Origin: Diplonema japonicum
Taxonomy: Eukaryota > Protista > Euglenozoa: Diplonemea
Direction of reading: 5' to 3'
Assembly (NCBI GenBank): GCA_964019335.1
Contig: OZ025673.1
Span: 372,001-436,000 of the forward strand
Length of the DNA stretch: 64,000 nucleotides
Shown here: positions 12,113-26,323 of the stretch, in pieces
Layout of the letters: each line of letters starts with the position of its first letter
How positions within the stretch are numbered: the first letter of the stretch is position 1
The notes under the pieces: model-generated
The model's input: only the letters and a program-made list of their open reading frames with translations
What the model was told of the DNA's origin: nothing
The model's database searches: none
Program-made: the position numbers and the translations under genes

Positions 12113-12689
12113 CTTTGCCTGTAACAGGGATGGCAAAGCACGTATAAAAGAAAAAAACTTTGAGAAAAATCTCTGAATATAGGCGATTTTTTCCCCCATT
12201 TTTTTTATTTTTTTTTTCTCATCCAAATCCACAGTTTTGCCCCGTAAACCAGTCAAAAAAGTCAACAAAAAAAAAAAAAGTAAAAGTCAAACTTGTGTGT
12301 AAAGTAAAACTGTGAATTCGAAGAGAAAAAAAAAAAGAACAAGAAAAAAAAAAAGCATCGCCTATTCAGAGGTATTCTCAATGTAAATGTAGTCTGTCAA
12401 CAACTTGCACAGCGTGCAGCGGCAGGCCTCCATGGCATCCCTGCTGGCGCATTGCAAGAGGGAGGGGAAAATATCTAAATTAGAAACAAAATAATTAACC
12501 GTACATATTGTTCGAACCCGTGCGGCAGGACAACACACACATCCTGCTGCCACGGTAATGATAAGTAGTGGGGTCTCAGACCCCTCTAAAATAACTAAAA
12601 TCTAACTACTAGCAGTCCACGCTTTCGCCACCACCCAACAATAGCGTGCCTTCCAGCTGTTGAGCTACGGTTCGACCACATGCCGGCAC

Positions 12690-14724
12690 TTAAGCGTCCT
12701 TTGTCCTCTTCCACTCATCGAAGCCCTCAAGGAGTGCCCCGTTCACGACACTCGAGAGGACCCTCGCAGAGAAGCCAGCATAGAAGAAGTTCCTGAACCC
12801 CCCTGCTGTCGCAACACCCGATCTGTAGACCTCACTGTAGGTGGATCCAGTCGCACTCATGAGGTTCCTTCGCACGGTGTCCCAGGGGTAAGCAAACAGT
12901 GACCCGAAAAGGGAAATCACCTGTCCGTGGGCGAAGCGGCTCACACGGTTCATCTTACCCCATTCCTCACCGTAGAATTCCTTCATGAGGTCCCACCCAC
13001 CAAGCTGCACACCACGGAAGATCATCAACCCAGGAGCGTCCATCATGAAGCCTCTGTAGAAGCCCCTCAGCCCACCCTGCGAGTACACATCCTTCGCAGC
13101 TTTGCCCCAAGTGCCCTGTGGATGTTGTGTTGTGTTGTGTTGGTCATTATTTTCTTTTTTTTTTGCCCATACCGAGTTCTTTGTTGCCATCTGCTGTCGC
13201 ATCACATCCAAGGGGTACGCCCACACAAGGGCGTTGATGACTCCGGTTGCAGCCCCTGAACCCACCTTCCCCGCGAAGTACATCCCGTACTGCTTGTCCT
13301 TGTTGTACCTGTGGTCAAGTGTTACGAATGGCTTCATCCCCACCGCACTAAAGCAGCCTCTGCGTCGCATTGCAACTCAACTCATCCAAGTAATGTTAAG
13401 GTAGAATGGTTCTTGGTAGCAGGAGACACAAAGTATCTTCAAGCCAAAAGCCAAAGTTGATAATCACATGCTGCACGTACAGCCTGCTTGCTTCTTGACA
13501 AGCTAAAGCGCGCAGTCTTACAACAGCGATGAGAGCGCGGGATTCGCTTGACGTTGGTTCCAGTTGGTCTGCCGACTCATCCAAGTAATGTTAAGGTAGA
13601 ATGGTTGTTGGTATCAAGAGACACAAAGTATCTTCAAGCCAAATGCCAAAGTTGATAATCATTGAACAGCTTCTTTTACTCTCCCACTCATTCATGTTTT
13701 CATTGCTCTCTCGGGCTATGAGGTGGCAACTAGACGTACAAAGAAAAAGGAATAGCTGTGTTATATACATCCCTGAGCAAGACAAACGGACCCTTGTTTC
13801 TATCATCAATTGAAAGAACAGCCAAAGACTCATCCAAGAATAATTAAGGTAGAATGGTTGTTTGGTATCAATAAACACGAATGTCTTCAAGCCAAATGCC
13901 AAAGTTGATAATCATCGGCCTTTTCTCCTTCATTACAGTTTGTCTCTCGGGTTATGAGGTGGCAGCTAGACGTACAAAGAAAAAGGAATAGCTGTGTTAT
14001 ATACATCCCTGAGCAAGATCAGTAGTTTCCTTCTCCCGAAGTAAAGTAAATTCACTATGATAGGAACGAAGTGGTTAGCAACGGCCCGCCAATAAAGTTA
14101 ACGAGTCAGATCTATGGGTGGAAACTAAGAACAGCGGTATCAAAGGTGCGGAGTGATGTTCACAATAGCACCACCACTGGGGGCTGTGCTCTATGAGGCC
14201 ACTCCTACCGCAGCACTACTCAAACCAACCAAGTGGAGATTGAAAGCCGCAAAAAGTGGGAAAACAATAGAAAAAAAGAAAAGAAAGAAGAAAACATACA
14301 CAGGGAAGTGTCCACTGAGGTGGTCCTTCAGGAAGAGAACAATGTACTGGGAAGGGAGCCACCTCACGATGGTGGGAGAGGCCCCTCGCCAGGCTGCAAG
14401 GTAACCCTCGTTTTTCATGTGCGAGATCGTGCGACCGAGGGACTGTGGTGGGTGAGACATCGTTTTCAGAATAATAACATACGTTGAAGTTGGATCCCTC
14501 AAATGTCTTGTTCGTGTGCTGTGTCTGCATCAGGAGCCTGATGCGCTCCACTGTTTGTGGTGGTAAGTTTAATTTTCATTTTTTTTTCATCTCATACTCG
14601 GGTAAGCCATCAGCTTGAAGGTGAACGGCACGGACTGCAGCGCCGCGAAGTGTCCCGCCGCCCTTGCGTACTTCATCACAACAAGCTCAGCAGGCACAGC
14701 AGTCGCATCAAGTTTGGCGCTCAT
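12690..14724 (-). CDS. Mitochondrial carrier, divergent ADP/ATP translocase-like, copy 1 (299 aa, 5 exons; snoRNA host)
   Basis: Three carrier signatures YPMERIR, YPLDVMR, YPWDTVRR. Introns 14551-14597, 14443-14482, 13309-14299 and 13116-13172 give a 900-nt CDS. Confidence 0.9.
13378..13470 (-). ncRNA. Box C/D snoRNA family A (snR13/U15-like), guide-variant copy
   Basis: C box GTGATTA, D' TTGA, D ATGA. Guide reads GGCTTTTGGC (one mismatch to target). CTACCTTAA element kept. Confidence 0.7.
13490..13553 (-). ncRNA. AGA-box single-hairpin snoRNA family E
   Basis: Lower stem CAAGC/GCTTG, pocket AATCC/CGCTT, upper stem CGC/GCG, AGA 15 nt from the pocket top. Confidence 0.6.
13574..13665 (-). 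ncRNA. Box C/D snoRNA family A (snR13/U15-like)
   Basis: C ATGATTA, guide GGCATTTGGC + D' TTGA, C'-like TTGATA, CTACCTTAA, D ATGA. Confidence 0.85.
13706..13775 (-). ncRNA. AGA-box single-hairpin snoRNA family B
   Basis: Lower stem GGG-ATG/CAT-CCC, upper stem CAGCTA/TAGTTG, AGA 15 nt from the pocket top. Confidence 0.78.
13825..13922 (-). ncRNA. Box C/D snoRNA family A (snR13/U15-like)
   Basis: Family A boxes and guide, plus terminal stem AAGGC/GTCTT. Confidence 0.85.
13942..14011 (-). ncRNA. AGA-box snoRNA family B
   Basis: Family B hairpin (CAGCTA/TAGCTG) plus AGA. Confidence 0.78.
14108..14235 (-). ncRNA. Long AGA-box snoRNA family C (about 128 nt)
   Basis: Single long hairpin ending in AGA-TCT. 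Pocket TGGTTT/TTAGTTT is complementary to LSU AGACUAA-UC-GAACCA. Confidence 0.72.
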
Positions 14725-15525
14725 TTTTCTTTTTTTTTAATATTTACAATACTACTTAAAGATGCTGACCCTTTGAACAGCAACAAAAGCAAAAGGAAAA
14801 AATACCATAATTGAAAGCAGCAACGGGGATCGCCGAATGGCCACACAAAAGATGCTAAAAGAAAGTTTGAAAAACTGGTAATCTAAGGGAGGAAAAAAGA
14901 AACCGTTCGTGGGGTAAAAACTCCTCACAGCGACACACACTGCCGCTAAGGTTAAAAAAGTAATGGTTCAGTGCCATATCTAAGGTGTTTAGGACTCTAG
15001 TTTGTAGTTTCTATTCATTTCTGTTCTTTTCACATGTCTTCACATTCAATCGGATCGTCTCGCGAGGTCGTGGTTGTGGTTGTACGGAGCGCCACCTAGG
15101 AGTCCCGCACTCCCTTTGGTCGCCAGGGATGTCGGGAGCCAACACTCTACGCGTCCTTTGTCCTCTTCCACTCATCGAAGCCCTCAAGGAGTGCCCCATT
15201 CACAACACTCGAGAGGACCCTCGCAGAGAAGCCAGCGTAGAAGAAGTTCCTGAACCCCCCTGCTGTTGCAACACCCGATCTGTAGACCTCACTGTAGGTG
15301 GATCCAGTCGCACTCATGAGGTTCCTTCGCACGGTGTCCCAAGGGTATGAGAACACAGACCCGAAAAGGGAAATCACCTGTCCGTGGGCGAAGCGGCTCA
15401 CACGGTTCATCTTACCCCATTCCCCACCTTCCCCGCGAAGTACATCCCGTACTGCTTGTCCTTGTTGTACCTGTATTAAGTGAATAGCTTGACCCACGAG
15501 ACGAGGCAGGAGCCATTGTCTTTTG

Positions 15526-15592
15526 ATTTCTTGTCCTGGAATACAGCACACAACTCGATCTTGTAACTAAGCAGCGTGGGATTAGCCTGACG
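15526..15592 (-). ncRNA. AGA-box snoRNA family E, diverged copy
   Basis: Keeps AATCC and (T)GCT pocket strands and AGA. Upper stem covaries CGC/GCG to CAC/GTG. Confidence 0.5.
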
Positions 15593-15707
15593 ACTAGTAG
15601 CACAGAATGATTCCAAGTATTGTACTCAGAGTCCCTCCCTCCCCTCCCCCCACAGAGTCAGTTTGCCTTACAAAGAAAGCGACAGGTCGTAACATTGCAA
15701 ACTTCCT

Positions 15708-15760
15708 TCCTCTCGGGCTATGAGTACAAAGAAAAAGGTATAGCTTGTGTTATACACCCC
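15708..15760 (-). pseudogene. Decayed family B snoRNA copy
   Basis: Internal deletion removes the 3' pocket strand and one upper-stem strand. Confidence 0.65.
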
Positions 15761-15779
15761 TTTGTTAGGAAGAACAGCC

Positions 15780-15880
15780 AAGACTCATCCAAGAATATTA
15801 AGGTAGAATGGTTGCTGGTATCAAGAAACACAAATATCTTGTGTCTTCAAGCCAAATGCCAAAGTTGATAATCATCGGCT
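15780..15880 (-). ncRNA. Box C/D snoRNA family A
   Basis: Family A boxes, guide and CTACCTTAA intact. Confidence 0.83.
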
Positions 15881-15939
15881 AATGTCCCCCTCCCACCCCC
15901 CCCCCTTTTTTTTCTCCATTGTCCCCCTACATTTTGAAA

Positions 15940-16008
15940 TTATCTCGGGCTATGAGGTGGCAGCTAGACGTACAAAGAAAAAGGAATAGCTGTGTTATAT
16001 ACATCCCT
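15940..16008 (-). ncRNA. AGA-box snoRNA family B
   Basis: Family B hairpin plus AGA. Confidence 0.78.
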
Positions 16009-16030
16009 TTTCTAATGTGTATGAAGAAGC

Positions 16031-16125
16031 AAGACTCATCCAAGAATAATTAAGGTAGAATGGTTGTTTGGTATCAATAAACACGAATGTCTTCAAGCCA
16101 AATGCCAAAGTTGATAATCATTGAT
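16031..16125 (-). ncRNA. Box C/D snoRNA family A
   Basis: Family A boxes and guide intact. Confidence 0.83.
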
Positions 16126-16235
16126 CTTTTTGAACTAATAAATCCCTCAAAGGCCCCCACCCCCCAAGAGTGCATCAGACGAGAACAGAGGAAGAAAGAG
16201 AGATGTGAAAAAGATAAGAAGGCAGATGTTGTTCA

Positions 16236-16326
16236 TGTCATCCAGTAAAATTAAGGTAGAATGGTTGTTTGGTATCAAAAGGCACTTAGTGCCTTCAAGC
16301 CAAATGCCAAAGTTGATAATCACCCA
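16236..16326 (-). ncRNA. Box C/D snoRNA family A
   Basis: C GTGATTA. Guide, D' and D conserved while spacers diverge. Confidence 0.82.
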
Positions 16327-16383
16327 TGAAGCACACCACAGCTGACTAAACATTCAGCTCGCAGGTGGTCGTTGGTTTTGAAG

Positions 16384-16453
16384 TTTTCTTGGGCTATGAG
16401 GTGGCAACTAGACGTACAAAGAAAAAGGAATAGCTGTGTTATATACATCCCTG
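16384..16453 (-). ncRNA. AGA-box snoRNA family B
   Basis: Ends CCC-A-AGA: AGA is conserved where the alternative CCGA D-box reading is not. Confidence 0.78.
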
Positions 16454-16502
16454 AGCAAGACAAACGGACCTGTGTCCCAATCATCAATTGGGAGAACAGC
16501 CA

Positions 16503-16600
16503 AAGACTCATCCAAGAATAATTAAGGTAGAATGGTTGTTTGGTATCAATAAACACGAATGTTTTCAAGCCAAATGCCAAAGTTGATAATCATCGGCCTT
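16503..16600 (-). ncRNA. Box C/D snoRNA family A
   Basis: Family A boxes, guide and terminal stem. Confidence 0.85.
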
Positions 16601-16629
16601 TTTGTCCTTGACACCAAGTTTTAATATTG

Positions 16630-16698
16630 CTTTCTCGGGTTATGAGGTGGCAGCTAGACGTACAAAGAAAAGGAATAGCTGTGTTATATACATCCCTG
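16630..16698 (-). ncRNA. AGA-box snoRNA family B
   Basis: Family B hairpin plus AGA. Confidence 0.78.
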
Positions 16699-16733
16699 AG
16701 CAAGACAAACAGTTCCCCTTCTTACAGCAAGGC

Positions 16734-16861
16734 AGATCTATGGGTGGAAACTAAGAACAGCGGTATCAAAGGTGCGGAGTGATGTTCACAATAGCACCAC
16801 CACTGGGGGCTGTGCTCTATGAGGCCACTCCTACCGCAGCACTACTCAAACCAACCAAGTG
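16734..16861 (-). ncRNA. Long AGA-box snoRNA family C
   Basis: Matches the copy at 14108. Identity stops just after AGA-TCT. Confidence 0.72.
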
Positions 16862-17739
16862 GAGATTAAAAGCCGCAAAAAGTGGGAAAACAAAAATAGA
16901 AAAAGATAAAAAGAGGGGAAAAAAAAAGTAAGAAAAAAACATACACAGGGAAGTGTCCACTGAGGTGGTCCTTCAGGAAGAGAACAATGTACTGGGAAGG
17001 GAGCCACCTCACGATGGTGGGAGAGGCCCCTCGCCAGGCTGCAAGGTAACCCTCGTTTTTCATGTGCGAGATCGTGCGACCGAGGGACTGTGGTGGGTGA
17101 GACATCGTTTTCAGAATAATAACATACGTTGAAGTTGGATCCCTCAAATGTCTTGTTCGTGTGCTGTGTCTGCATCAGGAGCCTGATGCGCTCCACTGTT
17201 GTTGGTTTTATTTTTCATTTCTTCCTTTTTTAAAAAAAAAAGAAAAGGTTCATCATCTCATACTTGGGTAAGCCATCAGCTTGAAGGTGAACGGCACAGA
17301 CTGCAGCGCCGCGAAGTGTCCCGCCGCCTTTGCGTACTTCATCACAACAAGCTCAGCAGGCACAGCAGTCGCATCAAGTTTGGCGCTCATTTTTCTTTTA
17401 ATGCCTATTCGGGAATAACAGTCCATGTGGCCAACAAAAAATATGAGAAACAAGATCGCTTCGGGGTAGAAAAAGGAAACGAAGGACTACAGAACAATAC
17501 ACGTTGCAAAGCAACTCTTTTTTTTTTTTTTTTTCTTTCTCTTTTTCTTTTTTTTTTTAAAATTCATGGACGTGGATTTTCTTTTTTTTCTTGACTTTTT
17601 TTTTTTTTTTTTTTTTACAAAAGGAAAAAAAGATTATCGTCGCCTACATGAAAAAAAGCATACAATCTTAAAAAAATAAAAAATAAAATAAAAACGGGTA
17701 CAATACAGAAGGGGGTAGGAGATTCTCTTCTTCTGTTTC

Positions 17740-20406
17740 CTAAGACAAGGGGAAGCCATTCATTTTCCACTCGAGTGGTTCAGAAGAAGCAAATCGATAC
17801 ACGGGCCGGGAGGAAGGGTTGGAGCAGAGGGAGAGAGGAGCAAAAGCCGTTTGAATTGGGAGAATGGACTTAATGCTGGCAGGGTGAACGTGCAGATTCT
17901 GCTTGAGGGGACGGAGAACCATGCTAGTCTCATTGAGCAGCTGGAGTTGTGCACACTGCTTGCCATCTTGCTTGAGGTAGAACCACTTTATCTCACCAAT
18001 AAAGGTCTCACCCTTGAAGCGAAACTCCACACAGTCCCTTGCAACAAGAACCCGTCCATCAATAAAGCACGCAGAATAGAATACTCTATCGCCTACAACT
18101 TTCCCCCTTCCCCTGAACTCTACAGGCGATGTTAGCAACATTTTGTTGTTCGTCATGCTCACTTTTGAATGGTAATACACATTCGCCAGTGCCGCGCTGC
18201 TGTGAACTTCTATGCGGTCGCCCATCAACCTGTCCGCCTTCACCTTGGCCTCCTCCTCCGTCTCGATCAGTGTTCTTGTGAAGGGTACCAAGCACCCTGC
18301 GCTGCATTTTGTTTCCGTCTGCGCGGCTTGTTCAAAATATCTAACAGAGACCTTGTCACCTTTCATGCCTAACACTCTGGCGATGCGTGGTTCCTGCATC
18401 CTTGAACCAGGACGGATGTACCTGATGTTCGAGTTGTCCCAGTCGGCGGGCAGGAGCCTCATCTCACCAGATTTTATCTGAAACCTTGCTTGGAAAATGT
18501 GCGGGAAACGGTTTTCATGGATTACGAAGATCTCTCTGAGCAGGCTTGTCGGTTCGCACCAGACTGTGCGGTCTGTCTCGATTACGCTCCTTCCTCTCGG
18601 CACCATGCATGAGGTGTGGCATTCTTGTGTCGCGGCAGCGAGCTGCTCGTAGATACGGATGTTAAACTTCCCTTCATTCTCTTCAGTTACCTTTCCGATT
18701 GTTATCTTGCCTGCAATCTTGAAAAGGAAGATTCTTTTCAAATACGGCTCAAGCTTCTGCGTCTGATCGACCAGTTCCGAAGCCATAGGGCACGACAGGA
18801 TGGATGTCGACTCCGTGCGGAGCACCTCCGGTAGCGGGGTGGCCGTTGTGGTCTTCTTTTGTTTCTTCGCAGGGTGCTCCTCTTGTATCGTGTTTGTATC
18901 TGGTTTCGTAATTGTCTCCTGCTTCGTCTTCGCCGCTTGTTTCTTGACTGCCTTCCTGTCTACAGAAGGGCTCTCGGATGTCAGGCCGTTGCTCCTCGAC
19001 TCTGAGGGTTCCCTTTTCCTTTTCGGTTCAGGCTTTTTTTTCGGTGTCCTGTCCTTTGCTTTCTCGTCCTCCTCCGTCCACCTGCGCATCTGATTCACGT
19101 TTGGCGCCACATATGAGGGGCTAGCGTTCCCGAACTGTACTCCGTACAAAGAGTCCTTGATGTCCACCACAGACCCCGTGGACCATGACGCGCCGTACTT
19201 TACTTGCACTGAAGTGCCTACGGAGAACTCCATTTTGGGTTTCGGTGTCTCGATCTCTTCTGCTATGTGCTTTTCGTTTTGGGGCTTCGGTGCTAGTTTT
19301 GCCTTTTTAGGGGTCGACATGCTCTTGGGTGCTGGTTTCTTCGGGCATGCCGGCTTTATTTTCTTTGGCTCCGCCTTGCGCATTTCGGTAGGGGGCATCA
19401 CCACAATCGAGAAGACTGTGCCTTCGAACAACACTCTGTATGACCCGTTGAGACAGCTTTCTATTGTTCCTCTGAGCCACTGTTTGTACTTGCACTCTAC
19501 TTCATCGCCGACGGCAAACCCCACCTGTTCGGGTTCGGACTCAGACGCTGACTGTGACTCTCGTTCAGACTCTGACTCAGTGTCGGTGTCTACCTGCTTC
19601 TTCGAGGAGGGCCGCCCCCGCACCTTTTTTTGAGCTGCTTTCTTCACAATCTTCTTCTTTTGTTTCGACTTTTCCTCCGATTCGCTCGAGGAAGAGGGCA
19701 CATCTACACCTTCCGACGATGAATCGACGTCCAGCTGGTTGTGCAGCGTCTTCTGTATTGTGTCCCTTGTGTCGCGCCTCTTCAGTGCCCTGACGACGGG
19801 GACTTCATGTGAAGAATCGCTTTCGTCTTTCGGAGTGTAGCACTCTATCGAAACAAGCCGGTCCATGAACACCACAGTTCTCCTCGTGCTGTGTTCGAAG
19901 ACCACCTCGCAGCTGAACGCGTTATTTATCTTTTCCACAACAGCGGTGTAAACCTTCTTGTCTCCTCTGTACACGATTTTGACATTGTCGCCCTCGGTAA
20001 GACCTGAGGTCTTCGGTGGAGGTAGCTTGGTCTTCGTCACTTTTGTTTTTTTCGAACGAGATTCCTCGTCGCGGAGCTCTTTGGGTGTCAGCTTCCTGTA
20101 CGGACTGACGTGGCTGTACACATCCGTTCGTTTGTCCTCGTTGTCGAGAATTACAGTGATGATGTCTTTAGTGCCCCTGCCGACAACTACGCCTCGAAGC
20201 TTCCCGTGGCTTTTCTTGTAAGTTATCTCAACCCTTGTGCCCCGTTCATAGGCACTGCTCTCTTCGGAGCTTTCATCGTAATGCAGACGCTTACTCTCCA
20301 CCATCTGTTCTGTCTTTAGCAAGTCTTGCGACGGGTGCGACTGCGAAGGTACAAAGGTAGAAGATCCGAACTGAGTAGTACTTGTGTCGACCTTCTCAGT
20401 GTTCAT
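17740..20406 (-). CDS. Multi-Tudor/Agenet-like and BAH-like chromatin protein (888 aa)
   Basis: Repeated GDEVECKYKQWLRGTI...YRVLFEG-type modules. C-terminal ARDCVEF...FIGEIKWFY is BAH-like. Lys-rich linkers. Confidence 0.65.
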   Translation of the reverse strand: MNTEKVDTSTTQFGSSTFVPSQSHPSQDLLKTEQMVESKRLHYDESSEESSAYERGTRVEITYKKSHGKLRGVVVGRGTKDIITVILDNEDKRTDVYSHVSPYRKLTPKELRDEESRSKKTKVTKTKLPPPKTSGLTEGDNVKIVYRGDKKVYTAVVEKINNAFSCEVVFEHSTRRTVVFMDRLVSIECYTPKDESDSSHEVPVVRALKRRDTRDTIQKTLHNQLDVDSSSEGVDVPSSSSESEEKSKQKKKIVKKAAQKKVRGRPSSKKQVDTDTESESERESQSASESEPEQVGFAVGDEVECKYKQWLRGTIESCLNGSYRVLFEGTVFSIVVMPPTEMRKAEPKKIKPACPKKPAPKSMSTPKKAKLAPKPQNEKHIAEEIETPKPKMEFSVGTSVQVKYGASWSTGSVVDIKDSLYGVQFGNASPSYVAPNVNQMRRWTEEDEKAKDRTPKKKPEPKRKREPSESRSNGLTSESPSVDRKAVKKQAAKTKQETITKPDTNTIQEEHPAKKQKKTTTATPLPEVLRTESTSILSCPMASELVDQTQKLEPYLKRIFLFKIAGKITIGKVTEENEGKFNIRIYEQLAAATQECHTSCMVPRGRSVIETDRTVWCEPTSLLREIFVIHENRFPHIFQARFQIKSGEMRLLPADWDNSNIRYIRPGSRMQEPRIARVLGMKGDKVSVRYFEQAAQTETKCSAGCLVPFTRTLIETEEEAKVKADRLMGDRIEVHSSAALANVYYHSKVSMTNNKMLLTSPVEFRGRGKVVGDRVFYSACFIDGRVLVARDCVEFRFKGETFIGEIKWFYLKQDGKQCAQLQLLNETSMVLRPLKQNLHVHPASIKSILPIQTAFAPLSLCSNPSSRPVYRFASSEPLEWKMNGFPLS

Positions 20407-20464
20407 TTGCCTGCAAGGGTAGGAGGAAGAACAAGCAAAAAAGAGAATTTAAAAAAAAAAAAAG

Positions 20465-20499
<35 letters not shown>

Positions 20500-20542
20500 A
20501 CGTTTGAACAAGAAAATAAAAATTCATTTTTTCTTAAGATTT

Positions 20543-22039
20543 TCAGAAGGTTAATGTGAATACAGCGACACCGAAGCCACGGAGGGTGAAGGGGGTTGTT
20601 GTAGGTGTGTTGGGAAGCTCGCCATAACATCCGGAAGTGCAACTGAAGGAGTCCCCCGTGGTCTGATCGACGTAAACAACAGAGTAGGAAGAAGATGGGA
20701 GATAAAGCACAGAATCGCTGTCTGCGGTGCTGACTAACAACAGCTTCCGAACCGATCCCACCGTGAACGCCTGCGCCGTGACATTCTGGACAAGGGGAGA
20801 AACATATGTATTATGCGCCGTCTTTGTCCCGTAAGGGAACGCGTCGATGAGGACCTTAAGGGTCCAGTACCGTGCGTTGCCGTTGCCTGTGTACCAGTCG
20901 ACCATTGAGGTGGAAGGCCATTCGTCGGTGCAGTTGGAACACAATGATTTCCCGGTGAAACCTATCACCTGCGACATCCCAAAGTGTTCTACTTGCAGCG
21001 GGCTCGCCTTTGCAAAAAGATACGCAAAGTTCGCTGCACACAACATATAGTACCCCTCCACAAAAATCGATGACGAAGCACATCCAATTTCGTTAATAAA
21101 CGTCTGCGTCGATGGGCTGTACGCCTGCTTAATACCCTCAATGGTGGCAACCTCATTGACAAACGTATCCATAGCAGGGAAATATATCTCGGCCATGTCA
21201 TCAAGAGTGTCGGACGATCCAATCACGTACTGGTGGTAGCTGATGCCGTCGAGGGGGATGTTCGAAGGGTTGTGGTTGCTTCTGTTGAGATGATGGGTGT
21301 AGTAGTCCAACTGGTTGTGCGTCCCCTTGGCCAAACCGATAAACTTCGTCCCGGGCATGATCTTGACCAGTTCAGTAACGATCGCGTCGTACAGCTGGTC
21401 ATAGTACTGAGGGCTCAAACCGTGCTCGTAAGATGGCTCGTTGAACACCTCCCACCACTCAAAGGTGTAGTTGTACCCTTTATGCCACGCCCCGCACTCA
21501 TCGGTGAACCCTCCTTTTGTGTAATAACTCGCTAGCCTTGTGTAATATCCGGTAATTTCTTTGAACGATTGGTCGCGAAGCTGCATTCCTTGCTCGTAAG
21601 GAACATCTCTTATATTGACAGGTGGAACTTGTACACCGGATTGCCACATCCATTCCGGGGATGTTGCAAACCCCGCTACCATAGGGTGTCCCGAGGTTGA
21701 TTCCATCAATGCGTTTGTAATCGGGTCCATGTAGGTGAAATTCCAATATGTTGTGCATGTCCCGTTCATATGAGGTTCATACAGCTCAGCCACCGCAAGG
21801 CGTGGGTATGGGAACCACGGGACATGTCGCATGTAGTCTGCCTGTAGGGCCTTCATGTTCGCGAAGACTGTTTTGCTTATGTTGCTCGTTCCTTCCAAGG
21901 TGTCCATTCTGTACTTTGGGTTGATCGATGTTTGGTACGTTGCGTGGGAGTTTGTTTGAACCCCGCTTTGCCAATCCACCGTCACGTCGCTGCACAGACA
22001 TCCCGCTGCCAGAAGCGGGAAGAGCTGGTAGCTTTTCAT
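20543..22039 (-). CDS. Secreted glycoside hydrolase, clan A (GH39-like), intronless
   Basis: Signal peptide, WEVFNEP acid/base motif, DGISYHQY, and FINEIG nucleophile motif. Confidence 0.78.
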   Translation of the reverse strand: MKSYQLFPLLAAGCLCSDVTVDWQSGVQTNSHATYQTSINPKYRMDTLEGTSNISKTVFANMKALQADYMRHVPWFPYPRLAVAELYEPHMNGTCTTYWNFTYMDPITNALMESTSGHPMVAGFATSPEWMWQSGVQVPPVNIRDVPYEQGMQLRDQSFKEITGYYTRLASYYTKGGFTDECGAWHKGYNYTFEWWEVFNEPSYEHGLSPQYYDQLYDAIVTELVKIMPGTKFIGLAKGTHNQLDYYTHHLNRSNHNPSNIPLDGISYHQYVIGSSDTLDDMAEIYFPAMDTFVNEVATIEGIKQAYSPSTQTFINEIGCASSSIFVEGYYMLCAANFAYLFAKASPLQVEHFGMSQVIGFTGKSLCSNCTDEWPSTSMVDWYTGNGNARYWTLKVLIDAFPYGTKTAHNTYVSPLVQNVTAQAFTVGSVRKLLLVSTADSDSVLYLPSSSYSVVYVDQTTGDSFSCTSGCYGELPNTPTTTPFTLRGFGVAVFTLTF

Positions 22040-22240
22040 GAGTGGATTCTAATTCTTTTTGTGTGTGTGTGTGTGTGTTTGTGTCGCAGGCAAGTGATAA
22101 TAAAATATTGAACTACAAAAGACATCAGTCTTTTTCTTTTTTTTTGCCCCCCCTTTTTTTTTCTATACAAAGAACACGCGGTTTGGCGCACGATTTCTCT
22201 CTTTTCCCCCCCCCCCCGTTTCTGATTTTTTGGTGTGAAG

Positions 22241-22275
<35 letters not shown>

Positions 22276-22276
22276 A

Positions 22277-23235
22277 TCACGCGTCCTTCGTCCTCTTCCA
22301 TTCATCAAAGCTTTCCAAAAGAGCGCCGTTCACGACGCTGGTCAAGATTCTTGCAGAAAACCCTGCGTAAAGGAAGCCTCTTAGCCCTGTTGAGTTACTG
22401 CTACTCAACGACAAAATGTCACTATAAGAAGTGTTTCTACAAGAAGACATCAAGTTACGCCTGATGGTGTCGACAGGGTAGGACACCACTGACCCCATAA
22501 GTGAGATCATCTGACCGTGCGCAAAGCGTGAAAAACTGCCCAACTGCGCCCATTTCTCTTCCCCATAGAAATCCTTCACAATGTCCCACCCACCAAGCTG
22601 CACACCACGGAAGATCATCAGCCCAGGAGCATTGATGAGAAATCCTCTATAAAACCCCTTAAGCCCATGGTGCCCATACACCTCTTTTACCCCGTTCCTC
22701 CATGAGCCAGAGTCTTTCGTAGCCAGCTGCTGTCTCACAACATCAAGCGGGTAGCCCCATATGAGGGAGTTTATTATCCCTGTGGCGGCTCCCCCACAGA
22801 CCTTGCTTACGAAAAATCGTGGATATTGCGTTTGCCGATCGTACCTGTGCGGTGTAAGGTGCAACGGGATTGTAAATAATACTTTGGTGAAAGGAACGTG
22901 AGGTAGTCCTTTAGGAACAATATAATGTACTGAGAGGGGATCCATCTTACAATTGTTGGTGTGGCTCCCTTCCATGCTGAAAGGTAGCCTTCTGTTTTCA
23001 TATGCGACATGGTGTTGGCAAGGGACTGTGGAATTTTGGGAAAAAAAAAAATGTTGGATCATACCGAAAATGATGCTCGTTCGTAGGTTTTGTTCACGTG
23101 CTGGGTTTGCATCAGAAGCCGGACCCTTTCCAAGGGGTAAGCCGCCAGCTTGATCCCAATCGGAATGGACTGCAGTTGAGCGAAATATGCCACCGCCTTT
23201 ACATAGCGTGTACCTGGGATTTCTGTTTGCGCCAT
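22277..23235 (-). CDS. ADP/ATP-carrier-like divergent paralog, 3 exons, no snoRNAs
   Basis: YPLERVR, YPLDVVR, YPVDTIRR. Introns 23026-23064 and 22845-22882 are at the same positions as host introns 2 and 3. Confidence 0.9.
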
Positions 23236-23854
23236 TGTTGTTTTTTACCCCTCTATATTGTCCGGGATTCTATTAAACTCATATGGATCCCTTGTTTTCC
23301 TATTTTTCTTTTTTTTTTTTGATTTTGAAACAATGAGGAAAGATTTTTTTTTTTAATAATAAACGATCTAAAAAGAAGAAAAAACGGGCGGTGAGGGGAT
23401 AAATCTATCAGGAGAAGAACGGAGAGAAAAAAAAGAAAAAAAAAAACGCTTATCTGAGGGAAAAATTATTTTCTTTACTTTTCACCTCAGAAATAAAAAA
23501 GGAAAAATAAAAAAAGAAGGAAAACTAAGATTGTAAAAATACATTTTTTTTTTTTTTTTTTTTTTTTTTTCATTCTCTTTCTTTTTTATACTTTTCCTCC
23601 AGTGCCTCTTCAATAGAAGAGGGTTAAGAACAAAGGAATTGAAGGGAAGAGACAAAAAAACAGCACAAGTAGGAAAGTCTGTACGATTCTTCTTTTTTTT
23701 TTCTTCTTTTCTTCATCGTTTTCATTCTTTCGTATTTTTTCATCTCTCTTGGCAACGCAACGGCATGTCAAAAAAAAAAAAAAAAAGAAGTACTAAATTA
23801 GTACCATAGATATCTAAAATAAAATCTTAAAATCGGAAAGAAAAGAAAATAGGC

Positions 23855-23886
<32 letters not shown>

Positions 23887-23994
23887 AAGGTAATTTGGAC
23901 AGAAATTGATATCAACTTACTACTAAACTAAAACGGTTTTGCAAACAGACAAGGTTGCCAGTTCAGGCAGTGTGTAAGAGATGGGTGGTCAAAG

Positions 23995-26323
23995 CTACGC
24001 GTCCTTTGTCCTCTTCCACTCATCGAAGCCCTCAAGGAGTGCCCCGTTCACAACACTCGAGAGGACCCTCGCAGAGAAGCCAGCATAGAAGAAGTTCCTG
24101 AACCCCCCTGCTGTTGCAACACCCGATCTGTAGACCTCACTGTAGGTGGATCCAGTCGCACTCATGAGGTTCCTTCGCACGGTGTCCCAAGGGTATGAGA
24201 ACACAGACCCGAAAAGGGAGATCACCTGTCCGTGGGCGAAGCGGCTCACACGGTTCATCTTACCCCATTCCTCACCGTAGTAGTCCTTCATGAGGTCCCA
24301 CCCACCAAGCTGCACACCACGGAAGATCATCAGCCCAGGAGCGTCCATCATGAAGCCTCTGTAGAAGCCCCTCAGCCCACCCTGCGAGTACACATCCTTC
24401 GCAGCTTTGCCCCAAGTGCCCTGTGGATGTTGTGTTGTGTTGGTCATTATTTTCTTTTTTTTTTTGTCCATACCGAGTTCTTTGTTGCCATCTGCTGTCG
24501 CATCACATCCAAGGGGTACGCCCACACAAGGGCGTTGATGACTCCGGTTGCTGCCCCTGAACCCACCTTCCCCACTAGGTACATCCCGTACTGCTTGTCC
24601 TTGTTGTACCTGTTGTGGGTTAAAAGAAGTCCCCCCCCCTCCAGTGTTCATAGGGCAGCAGCGGGAGTTAATCCCATTGAACAACAAGGAAAACAGCCAA
24701 GACTCATCCAAGAATATTAAGGTAGAATGGTTGCTGGTATCAAGAAACACAAATATCTTGTGTCTTCAAGCCAAATGCCAAAGTTGATAATCATCGGCTA
24801 ATGTCCCCCTCCCACCCCCCCCCTTTTTTTTCTCCATTGTCCCCCTACATTTTGAAATTATCTCGGGCTATGAGGTGGCAGCTAGACGTACAAAGAAAAA
24901 GGAATAGCTGTGTTATATACATCCCTTTTCTAATGTGTATGAAGAAGCAAGACTCATCCAAGAATAATTAAGGTAGAATGGTTGTTTGGTATCAATAAAC
25001 ACGAATGTCTTCAAGCCAAATGCCAAAGTTGATAATCATTGATCTTTTTGAACTAATAAATCCCTCAAAGGCCCCCACCCCCCAAGAGTGCATCAGACGA
25101 GAACAGAGGAAGAAAGAGAGATGTGAAAAAGATAAGAAGGCAGATGTTGTTCATGTCATCCAGTAAAATTAAGGTAGAATGGTTGTTTGGTATCAAAAGG
25201 CACTTAGTGCCTTCAAGCCAAATGCCAAAGTTGATAATCACCCATGAAGCACACCACAGCTGACTAAACATTCAGCTCGCAGGTGGTCGTTGGTTTTGAA
25301 GTTTTCTTGGGCTATGAGGTGGCAACTAGACGTACAAAGAAAAAGGAATAGCTGTGTTATATACATCCCTGAGCAAGACAAACGGACCTGTGTCCCAATC
25401 ATCAATTGGGAGAACAGCCAAAGACTCATCCAAGAATAATTAAGGTAGAATGGTTGTTTGGTATCAATAAACACGAATGTTTTCAAGCCAAATGCCAAAG
25501 TTGATAATCATCGGCCTTTTCTCCTTCATTACAGTTTGTCTCTCGGGCTATGAGGTGGCAGCTAGACGTACAAAGAAAAAGGAATAGCTGTGTTATATAC
25601 ATCCCTGAGCAAGATCAGTAGGTTCCTTCTCCCGAAGTAAAGTAAATTCACTATGATAGGAACGAAGTGGTTAGCAACGGCCCGCCAATAAAGTTAACGA
25701 GTCAGATCTATGGGTGGAAACTAAGAACAGCGGTATCAAAGGTGCGGAGTGATGTTCACAATAGCACCACCACTGGGGGCTGTGCTCTATGAGGCCACTC
25801 CTACCGCAGCACTACTCAAACCAACCAAGTGGAGATTGAAAGCCGCAAAAAGTGGGAAAACAATAGAAAAAAAGAAAAGAAAGAAGAAAACATACACAGG
25901 GAAGTGTCCACTGAGGTGGTCCTTCAGGAAGAGAACAATGTACTGGGAAGGGAGCCACCTCACGATGGTGGGAGAGGCCCCTCGCCAGGCTGCAAGGTAA
26001 CCCTCGTTTTTCATGTGCGAGATCGTGCGACCGAGGGACTGTGATGGGTGATATATCGTTTTCAGAATAATAACATACGTTGAAGTTGGATCCCTCAAAT
26101 GTCTTGTTCGTGTGCTGTGTCTGCATCAGGAGCCTGATGCGCTCCACTGTTTGTGGTGGTAAGTTTAATTTTCATATTTCTTTCATCATCTCATACTTGG
26201 GTAAGCCATCAGCTTGAAGGTGAACGGCACAGACTGCAGCGCCGCGAAGTGTCCCGCCGCCCTTGCGTACTTCATCACAACAAGCTCAGCAGGCACAGCA
26301 GTCGCATCAAGTTTAGCACTCAT
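23995..26323 (-). CDS. ADP/ATP-carrier-like copy 3 (5 exons; snoRNA host)
   Basis: Near-identical to copy 1 with intact frame. Intron 3 is 24610-25895 and intron 4 is 24421-24473. Confidence 0.9.
24699..24799 (-). ncRNA. Box C/D snoRNA family A
   Basis: Family A boxes and guide. Confidence 0.83.
24858..24926 (-). ncRNA. AGA-box snoRNA family B
   Basis: Family B hairpin plus AGA. Confidence 0.78.
24949..25043 (-). ncRNA. Box C/D snoRNA family A
   Basis: Family A boxes and guide. Confidence 0.83.
25154..25244 (-). ncRNA. Box C/D snoRNA family A
   Basis: Family A boxes and guide. Confidence 0.82.
25302..25371 (-). ncRNA. AGA-box snoRNA family B
   Basis: Family B hairpin plus AGA. Confidence 0.78.
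25421..25518 (-). ncRNA. Box C/D snoRNA family A
   Basis: Family A boxes, guide and terminal stem. Confidence 0.85.
25538..25607 (-). ncRNA. AGA-box snoRNA family B
   Basis: Family B hairpin plus AGA. Confidence 0.78.
25704..25831 (-). ncRNA. Long AGA-box snoRNA family C
   Basis: Matches the copies at 14108 and 16734. Confidence 0.72.

Follow-up and report, generated by a model that had tools for sequence, protein, structure and literature searches.

The 64-kb stretch of DNA analysed here (the window) carries, on its minus strand, three tandem copies of a gene for an ADP/ATP-carrier-like protein, and in each of them intron 3 is long and holds an array of repeated units. We propose that each of these introns is a polycistronic cluster of small nucleolar RNA (snoRNA) genes, oriented in the sense of the triplicated host gene of a diplonemid-like euglenozoan, and we put the probability of this reading at about 0.77. 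That the units are genuine guide-RNA genes is very probable, and the intron that contains them is real and spliced. From the anatomy of the sequence, its complementarity to ribosomal RNA (rRNA) and the joining of the exons, all three observed directly, we infer stable RNAs, rRNA modifications and a processing route. Three families of units are distinguished below: a box C/D RNA (family A), a short single hairpin with an AGA box (family B) and a long hairpin of the same type (family C).

Motif and end inspection of the window gave three GT..AG introns of 991, 1474 and 1286 nucleotides (nt), located on the minus strand at 13309-14299, 15471-16944 and 24610-25895, as stated in an earlier note made from the sequence alone. 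The neighbouring introns of the host genes are short (57, 40 and 47 nt). That note had also taken the hosts for ADP/ATP-carrier-like genes with a cis-spliced intron, which is borne out by domain and structure matches and by an exon joint. Searched one at a time against Pfam and solved structures, and not as a joined model, the exons of these three tandem mitochondrial-carrier paralogues matched Mito_carr, and the best solved-structure match of the last exon was to ADP/ATP carriers (E = 6.6e-11). Copy 1 (12693-14724) consists of five exons in an open frame, with joints present in RNA-like contigs, and copy 3 (23995-26323) appears intact on reading the sequence. Copy 2 (15147-17392) has suffered a deletion after exon 4 (window 15407-15470) that fuses this exon out of frame to the middle of exon 5; the product ends ...GKVGNGVR before a stop at about 15407-15409. 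This frameshifted copy carries the largest snoRNA intron of the three. A fourth carrier paralogue lies at 22277-23234 on the minus strand, is about 69% identical to the other copies and likewise matches Mito_carr. It has one short intron and lacks a snoRNA intron, since its reading frame runs on without a break where introns 3 and 4 would lie.

Each intron 3 contains six to nine snoRNA units, and motif searches confirmed that the units alternate and that every one of them is sense to its host. In the direction of transcription, the order in copy 1 is C, a 41-nt repeat, B, A, B, A, a unique spacer and a degenerate A. Copy 2 reads C, B, A, B, A, A, B, A and a truncated B, followed by a 240-nt tail that is single-copy in the genome, and copy 3 reads C, the 41-nt repeat, B, A, B, A, A, B, A. 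The three carrier copies are the result of a recent tandem duplication, and the common position of the arrays reflects descent, not selection.

Splicing was examined over 12500-17400 with assembled contigs of four runs (X11-X14) that cover part of the stretch. The expected junction was found: in all four runs 14299-14442 adjoins 13172-13307 within a single contig and at contiguous record coordinates, which shows that intron 3 of copy 1 is removed as predicted. The same contigs also skip 13115-13171 and 14443-14482 (CT..AC on the plus strand). These runs are labelled with other organism codes, and 1-5% of their bases differ from the window; copies 2 and 3 are indistinguishable from copy 1 in these contigs, and the exon joint is therefore reported for copy 1.

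Family A was found by motif search in 11 copies, distributed 3+4+4 over the three introns, and the description of these as 11 box C/D RNAs is upheld by their boxes, stems and rRNA target. The reference copy (13824-13920) contains a C box AUGAUUA, a guide GGCAUUUGGC, a D' box UUGA, an internal stem, a C' box UGAUAC, an element CUACCUUAA and a D box AUGA. The first intron holds a second regular copy at 13571-13667, found by motif search and alignment, and a third at 13376-13472 that is probably degenerate, with GGCUUUUGGC as its guide and UGCUAC in place of C'. Alignment placed the remaining copies, all on the minus strand like the former, at 16502-16598, 16232-16328, 16030-16126 and 15779-15880 in the second intron and at 25420-25516, 25150-25246, 24948-25044 and 24698-24799 in the third. 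The copies at 16232-16328 (supported by covariation as well) and 25150-25246 belong to a subtype with a CAUG/CAUG terminal stem, and those at 15779-15880 and 24698-24799 have a longer internal stem. The order of elements is the same in all copies: 5' stem, C box RUGAUUA, guide region UCAACUUUGGCAUUUGGC, D' box UUGA, stem-loop, C' box UGAUAC and CAAACAACCAUUCUACCUUAA, after which come a variable stretch of 8-10 nt, GG-AUGA with the D box, and the 3' stem. Boxes and guide are unchanged in 21 of the 22 genomic copies, and the C box RUGAUUA and D box AUGA are invariant in all 12 distinct aligned copies.

Box C/D RNAs typically have a C box RUGAUGA near the 5' end and a D box CUGA near the 3' end, which form a K-turn. 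In the alignment, U6 of the family A C box is matched by A1 of the D box, and the tandem GA/GA pairs of the K-turn are present. The two departures thus restore a Watson-Crick pair at the position normally occupied by G6-C1, and this pair of the K-turn is kept. Both helices show compensatory change. Pairing of the internal stem is complete (100%) across the 12 distinct copies, with changes on both sides in three of its five pairs, and the terminal stem occurs as a CAUG/CAUG (4 bp) and a GAC/GUC (3 bp) subtype, with three of four aligned pairs changed on both sides. The covariation score observed for the terminal and internal helices was reached by none of 500 shuffles, and it collapsed when the registers were slid.

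The guide of family A points to a site in the large-subunit (LSU) rRNA. Its segment GGCAUUUGGCU is the exact Watson-Crick complement of LSU 2348-2358 (11 nt) and ends at D', and the invariant element CUACCUUAA is the exact complement of the abutting LSU 2341-2349 (9 nt). Counted from D' UUGA, the fifth base of the guide GGCAUUUGGC(U) lies opposite LSU A2353. When LSU helices H69-H71 were aligned by hand to those of yeast, a numbering offset of 73 resulted and A2353 corresponded to yeast A2280, which is methylated under the guidance of snR13 (PMC4174444). Family A would thus be a box C/D guide for a predicted 2'-O-methylation of LSU A2353. The bases directly upstream of the D box vary among copies and have no rRNA match, which indicates that only D' guides; CUACCUUAA is best read as a putative accessory pairing with the nine rRNA bases just upstream, not as a second methylation guide. 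A further 11-nt match of family A, to position 1158 of the small-subunit (SSU) rRNA, falls in the variable internal stem and was attributed to chance.

Family B is represented in the introns by eight full copies and one that is internally deleted. The reference copy (13942-14012) is an AGA-box single hairpin of the H/ACA-like type with the pocket strands UAUAAC and CACCUC. Seven other full copies were placed by alignment at 13706-13776, 16630-16699, 16384-16454, 15940-16010, 25538-25608, 25302-25372 and 24858-24928, again on the minus strand; at 15709-15762 the 3' half of stem II is deleted and the copy is a likely pseudogene. By folding, the RNA of about 68 nt forms one hairpin with a 6-bp stem I (GGG-AUG/CAU-CCC) that includes a 2-nt bulge and a perfect 6-bp stem II. 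An A precedes stem I, one free base separates the stem from AGA, and the distance from the start of the 3' pocket strand to AGA is 14 nt. In the H/ACA-like RNAs of trypanosomatids, AGA follows stem I after 1-3 nt, the target U lies 13-16 nt upstream of AGA, and pairing with rRNA is in two parts of 3-9 nt per side around an unpaired U-N (PMC2613932); the geometry of the family B hairpin fits this consensus.

The pocket of family B (CACCUC and UAUAAC) forms 6+6 pairs, none of them G-U, with the LSU sequence GAGGUG-[U2528 A]-GUUAUA, and at this fixed pocket only 1 of 2000 shuffled pockets did as well. Position U2528 emerged when the pocket boundaries were allowed to shift by one base; with the pocket defined one base off per side, no rRNA target was obtained. 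Differences among the 14 full copies are confined to the loop, the bulge, the distal pocket, stem II (G-C to G-U) and the base before AGA. We thus regard family B as an AGA-box guide for a predicted pseudouridine at LSU U2528. Complementarity of the guides to the organism's own rRNA, on which the earlier note had staked its reading, is thereby found for families A and B, both with statistically supported LSU targets. An 11-nt antisense match of family B to 5.8S rRNA (45-55) was set aside as chance, as it overlaps stem II, offers no suitably placed U and is expected about once in ten units.

Family C occurs once in each intron (14108-14232, with copies found by motif search at 16734-16858 and 25704-25828, all on the minus strand). 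Its units of about 124 nt fold into a single long AGA-box hairpin at -42.1 kcal/mol compared with about -35 for two hairpins, and a two-hairpin H/ACA model was ruled out on this energy. The hairpin consists of stem I, a 7/6-nt pocket with the strands UUUGAGU and UAGUUU, and one free base followed by AGA, 14 nt below the pocket. With these boundaries kept exactly, the top Watson-Crick target falls in helix 69, AACUA-[U2333 G]-ACUC, with 5+4 pairs; this position equals yeast 2260 by the offset of 73. It was matched by 21 of 2000 shuffles, a weaker case than that of family B, and LSU U1110 is an alternative (3+8 pairs, one of them G-U) if the pocket is shifted by one base. The four genomic copies of family C are near-identical and offer no covariation. 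Most likely, family C would guide a predicted pseudouridine at helix 69 U2333.

The earlier note had counted 13 single-hairpin AGA RNAs. Eight family B and three family C units, 11 intact ones in all, stand, and the two units assigned to a family E turned out to be a dispersed repeat. The core of this 41-nt element is inserted between the C unit and the first B unit in the spacers of the long introns of carrier copies 1 (14051-14090) and 3 (25647-25686), both times on the minus strand; it is absent from the copy-2 intron and from an intergenic array described below. Its 37-nt core has 416 copies in the genome, which usually lie between T-runs and have unrelated flanks. Aligned copies (L007-L012) share only GGCGGGCC...GTGAA (41 nt), and at two loci (L009, L010) the element is the 3' end of a longer shared element. 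More than 100 RNA-like contigs match the stretch 14048-14097; their A/T-rich flanks are unrelated and their depth, when summed, is very high. The fold of the element is no better than that of shuffled sequences (z = +0.38). Dispersed copies with unrelated flanks exclude it as a guide RNA, a spliced-leader-like RNA or another small-RNA unit.

The arrays are not confined to the carrier genes. A search of the 62.5-Mb genome returned 22 A, 15 B and 4 C units, all of them on the minus strand of one contig (C26). Those outside the introns make up two further arrays, one at 516.9-518.5 kb (L013 2390-3963) and one at 527.0-527.9 kb (L014 2966-3967), which are 130-155 kb away from the carrier introns and on the same strand. 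Carrier exons were sought at both and none were found. About 200 nt separate the end of each array, after a pyrimidine tract and AG, from the downstream ATG of a duplicated cysteine-rich gene, which is where an intergenic spacer or an outron would lie. The unit order of the introns, beginning with C, recurs in one of the two arrays, and in L013 an insertion of about 250 nt (about 2700-2950) interrupts one B copy.

Two arrays outside the carrier genes provide a second possible source of the RNAs. The guides could be real, with the two intergenic arrays as the main source of their mature forms; the intronic copies would then be passengers of a segmental duplication and be degraded with the intron. 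We regard this as improbable. It would account for same-order arrays outside carrier genes and for the degeneration of one intronic A and one intronic B copy. The sole RNA-like contig spanning two units, a possible precursor of 524 nt from a relative, contains an A unit connected to an intergenic-type spacer and also points this way. However, 10 of 11 intronic A and 8 of 9 intronic B copies keep their boxes, guides and stems just as the intergenic copies do, an intronic unit in a polycistronic transcript would be equally open to snoRNP assembly, and some run depth falls on intronic A units (bins 13484-13811 and 15780-15943).

The same arrays bear on a specific form of the earlier suggestion, in which the cluster would have no route of release other than cis-splicing of the carrier intron and rRNA modification would be coupled to the expression of a mitochondrial carrier. 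Three paralogues keep the array in the same intron, and RNA-like contigs indicate that this intron is spliced. Nonetheless, an array of A, B and C units that exists twice without a carrier gene makes a specific tie between rRNA modification and carrier expression unlikely, and three other observations speak against it: the largest array sits in the frameshifted copy 2, the divergent fourth paralogue (22277-23234) has no such intron, and recent tandem duplication explains the common position. We therefore give such coupling very little credence. Instead, the intronic position of the array is most likely incidental, and any non-coding stretch of a polycistronic transcript would serve.

Returning to the proposal that the introns are sense snoRNA clusters, we envisage that the units are transcribed within a unidirectional RNA polymerase II (Pol II) gene cluster and that snoRNP proteins bind each of them. 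The spacers would then be cut and the ends trimmed back to protein-protected limits, by analogy with plant and trypanosomatid clusters, and the intron would be spliced out of the carrier mRNA. Segmental duplication multiplied the array along with its host gene.

Several points weigh against this proposal. All four boxes of family A deviate from the consensus. A check of the units against Rfam, which the earlier note had named as a way to verify them, gave no family at gathering score in the window and no snoRNA family up to E <= 10 in 13200-17000, so that Rfam is without any snoRNA match for the units. Copies are near-identical through recent duplication, which makes invariance alone weak evidence of selection. 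In family B one unpaired base lies between each pocket strand and stem II, and family C (about 124 nt) is longer than any described AGA-type RNA, well outside the size range of 57-91 nt (PMC2613932), with a modest target of 9 bp. The mature RNAs of about 90 (A), 68 (B) and 124 nt (C) are predictions, and the RNA nature of the run contigs is a guess whose sole support is the missing introns. Finally, an 11-nt antisense match is by itself common by chance, with 144 such matches in the reversed window. Chance is nevertheless unlikely for the family A target, because the match abuts D' and is invariant, a second match covers the neighbouring bases and the site is a known modification site; a rough estimate puts the joint probability of a chance origin at about 1e-4.

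A further reading, in which the units are repeats without function (a satellite, or snoRNA pseudogenes in decay) that enlarge an intron, is very improbable: the absence of an Rfam match, the non-canonical boxes and the finding that 'family E' is a dispersed repeat would suit it, but it leaves unexplained the compensatory changes in the family A stems, the concentration of family B variation in loop, bulge and distal pocket, the pocket-to-AGA spacing obeyed by B and C with targets at P ~0.0005 and ~0.01 by shuffling, and three predicted targets within about 200 nt of the LSU, two of them at sites modified in yeast.

Lineage and transcription context agree with a guide-RNA cluster in a diplonemid. 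Except for a few that overlap longer minus-strand frames, all open reading frames of more than 200 amino acids in the window are on the minus strand. A pattern based on the spliced leader of kinetoplastids and diplonemids (its 3' half) had 216 matches in the genome and none in the control, and the full leader is present at three loci (L015-L017) as ACCAACGATTCTAAAGCTACAGTTTCTGTACTTTATTG followed by GTA. The rDNA unit measures 6.8 kb, with an SSU of 2070 nt and an unbroken LSU of 3480 nt. Kinetoplastids have at most three intron-bearing genes (PMC11613528), and 28S rRNA is split in kinetoplastids and euglenids and unsplit in Diplonema (PMC10161547). Spliced leader, unfragmented LSU and frequent cis-introns thus fit a diplonemid.

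The arrangement joins two things that are known separately, the mixed euglenozoan cluster of C/D and AGA-box RNAs and the intronic snoRNA cluster of plants and Chlamydomonas. With trypanosomatids and Euglena it shares clusters in which C/D and single-hairpin AGA RNAs are mixed and tandemly reiterated and which are presumably processed as polycistrons (PMC2613932). There, however, the clusters are free-standing and AGA-type RNAs do not approach the length of family C (PMC2613932), whereas here three of five arrays lie inside a cis-spliced intron. In plants and Chlamydomonas reinhardtii several snoRNA genes may occupy one intron (PMC7671301, which cites Chen et al. 2008). The likeness extends to the presence of both snoRNA classes in a single spliceosomal intron, sense to its protein-coding host, to isoform families that arose by duplication, and to a polycistronic precursor that needs cuts between its units (PMC7671301). 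The present system differs in having single AGA-box hairpins in place of two-hairpin H/ACA RNAs, a host within a unidirectional trans-spliced cluster, and an array that is also intergenic.

Family A shares its predicted target, the second A of GCCAAAUGCC between helices 70 and 71 (yeast A2280), with yeast snR13 and human SNORD15 (U15) (PMC4174444). Unlike these, it is without detectable homology or an Rfam match, it has the variant boxes RUGAUUA and AUGA, and it possesses an extra conserved 9-nt element that pairs with the adjoining rRNA. Two metagenome scans for relatives of family A found none. Family A may thus be considered a functional analogue only of snR13/SNORD15.

Among the papers searched none described diplonemid snoRNAs, and the main text of the Diplonema papillatum genome paper held no mention of them, in line with the earlier note, which knew of no description from this group. 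If our reading is true, the units are the first snoRNA genes described for a diplonemid-like organism, and the AGA-box single-hairpin design, found in kinetoplastids and euglenids, reaches a third euglenozoan branch. It yields three concrete LSU predictions, namely Am2353, pseudouridine 2333 and pseudouridine 2528. An array that is both intronic and intergenic in one genome would moreover be a natural system for the dependence of snoRNA processing on splicing. It implies no new mechanism, and the link to the carrier is probably an accident of duplication.

Non-coding host genes of the UHG/GAS5 type in animals carry one snoRNA per host intron. Carrier copy 2, which has lost its frame and kept the largest array, resembles a host of this kind that is kept only for its intron, although several units share an intron here. 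One may speculate that in this lineage the arrays are spreading cassettes that settle in introns and spacers, and that a protein-coding host can decay to a pure snoRNA host; we consider this tentative and rather doubtful. If true, it would offer a protist parallel to the animal genes, set within polycistronic trans-spliced units.

Some minor features of the arrays and of the genome may be added. A spacer motif, TTTTCCC(A)(C)TTTT(T)GCGGC, occurs just upstream of C units and of CAUG-type A units in intronic and intergenic arrays alike (window 14240-14265 and 25835-25860; L013 3495-3515; L014 3437-3457 and 3955-3975), and it may serve as a signal for processing or be a scar left by duplication. 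The single-copy intron stretches 13473-13572 and 15475-15745 showed no convincing snoRNA boxes on inspection. Within them, two minus-strand segments (13521-13531 and about 15655-15670) are complementary to neighbouring parts of the 5' end of the LSU, CAUCGCUGUUG to LSU 66-76 and GUCGCUUUCUUU, with one mismatch, to LSU 58-69, and UGUAAG follows both. These segments may be relics of another guide family, or chance matches.

The GGTA that comes after the leader in the SL RNA gene is present in only about 27 of the 216 copies of the spliced-leader 3' half; most have GGTC or GGTG instead, and many are located a few kb or less from the end of a contig. Retroelements or relics with the leader at their start would fit this pattern. 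Outside the rDNA array there are scattered partial copies of the SSU rRNA, 36-590 nt long (most of them 100-590), at C37:500460-501050, C78:225662-226071, C80:201742-202018, C18:611890-612361, C34:455854-456158 and C22:271656-271941, and recall the dispersed rRNA gene pieces of Diplonema papillatum (PMC10161547).

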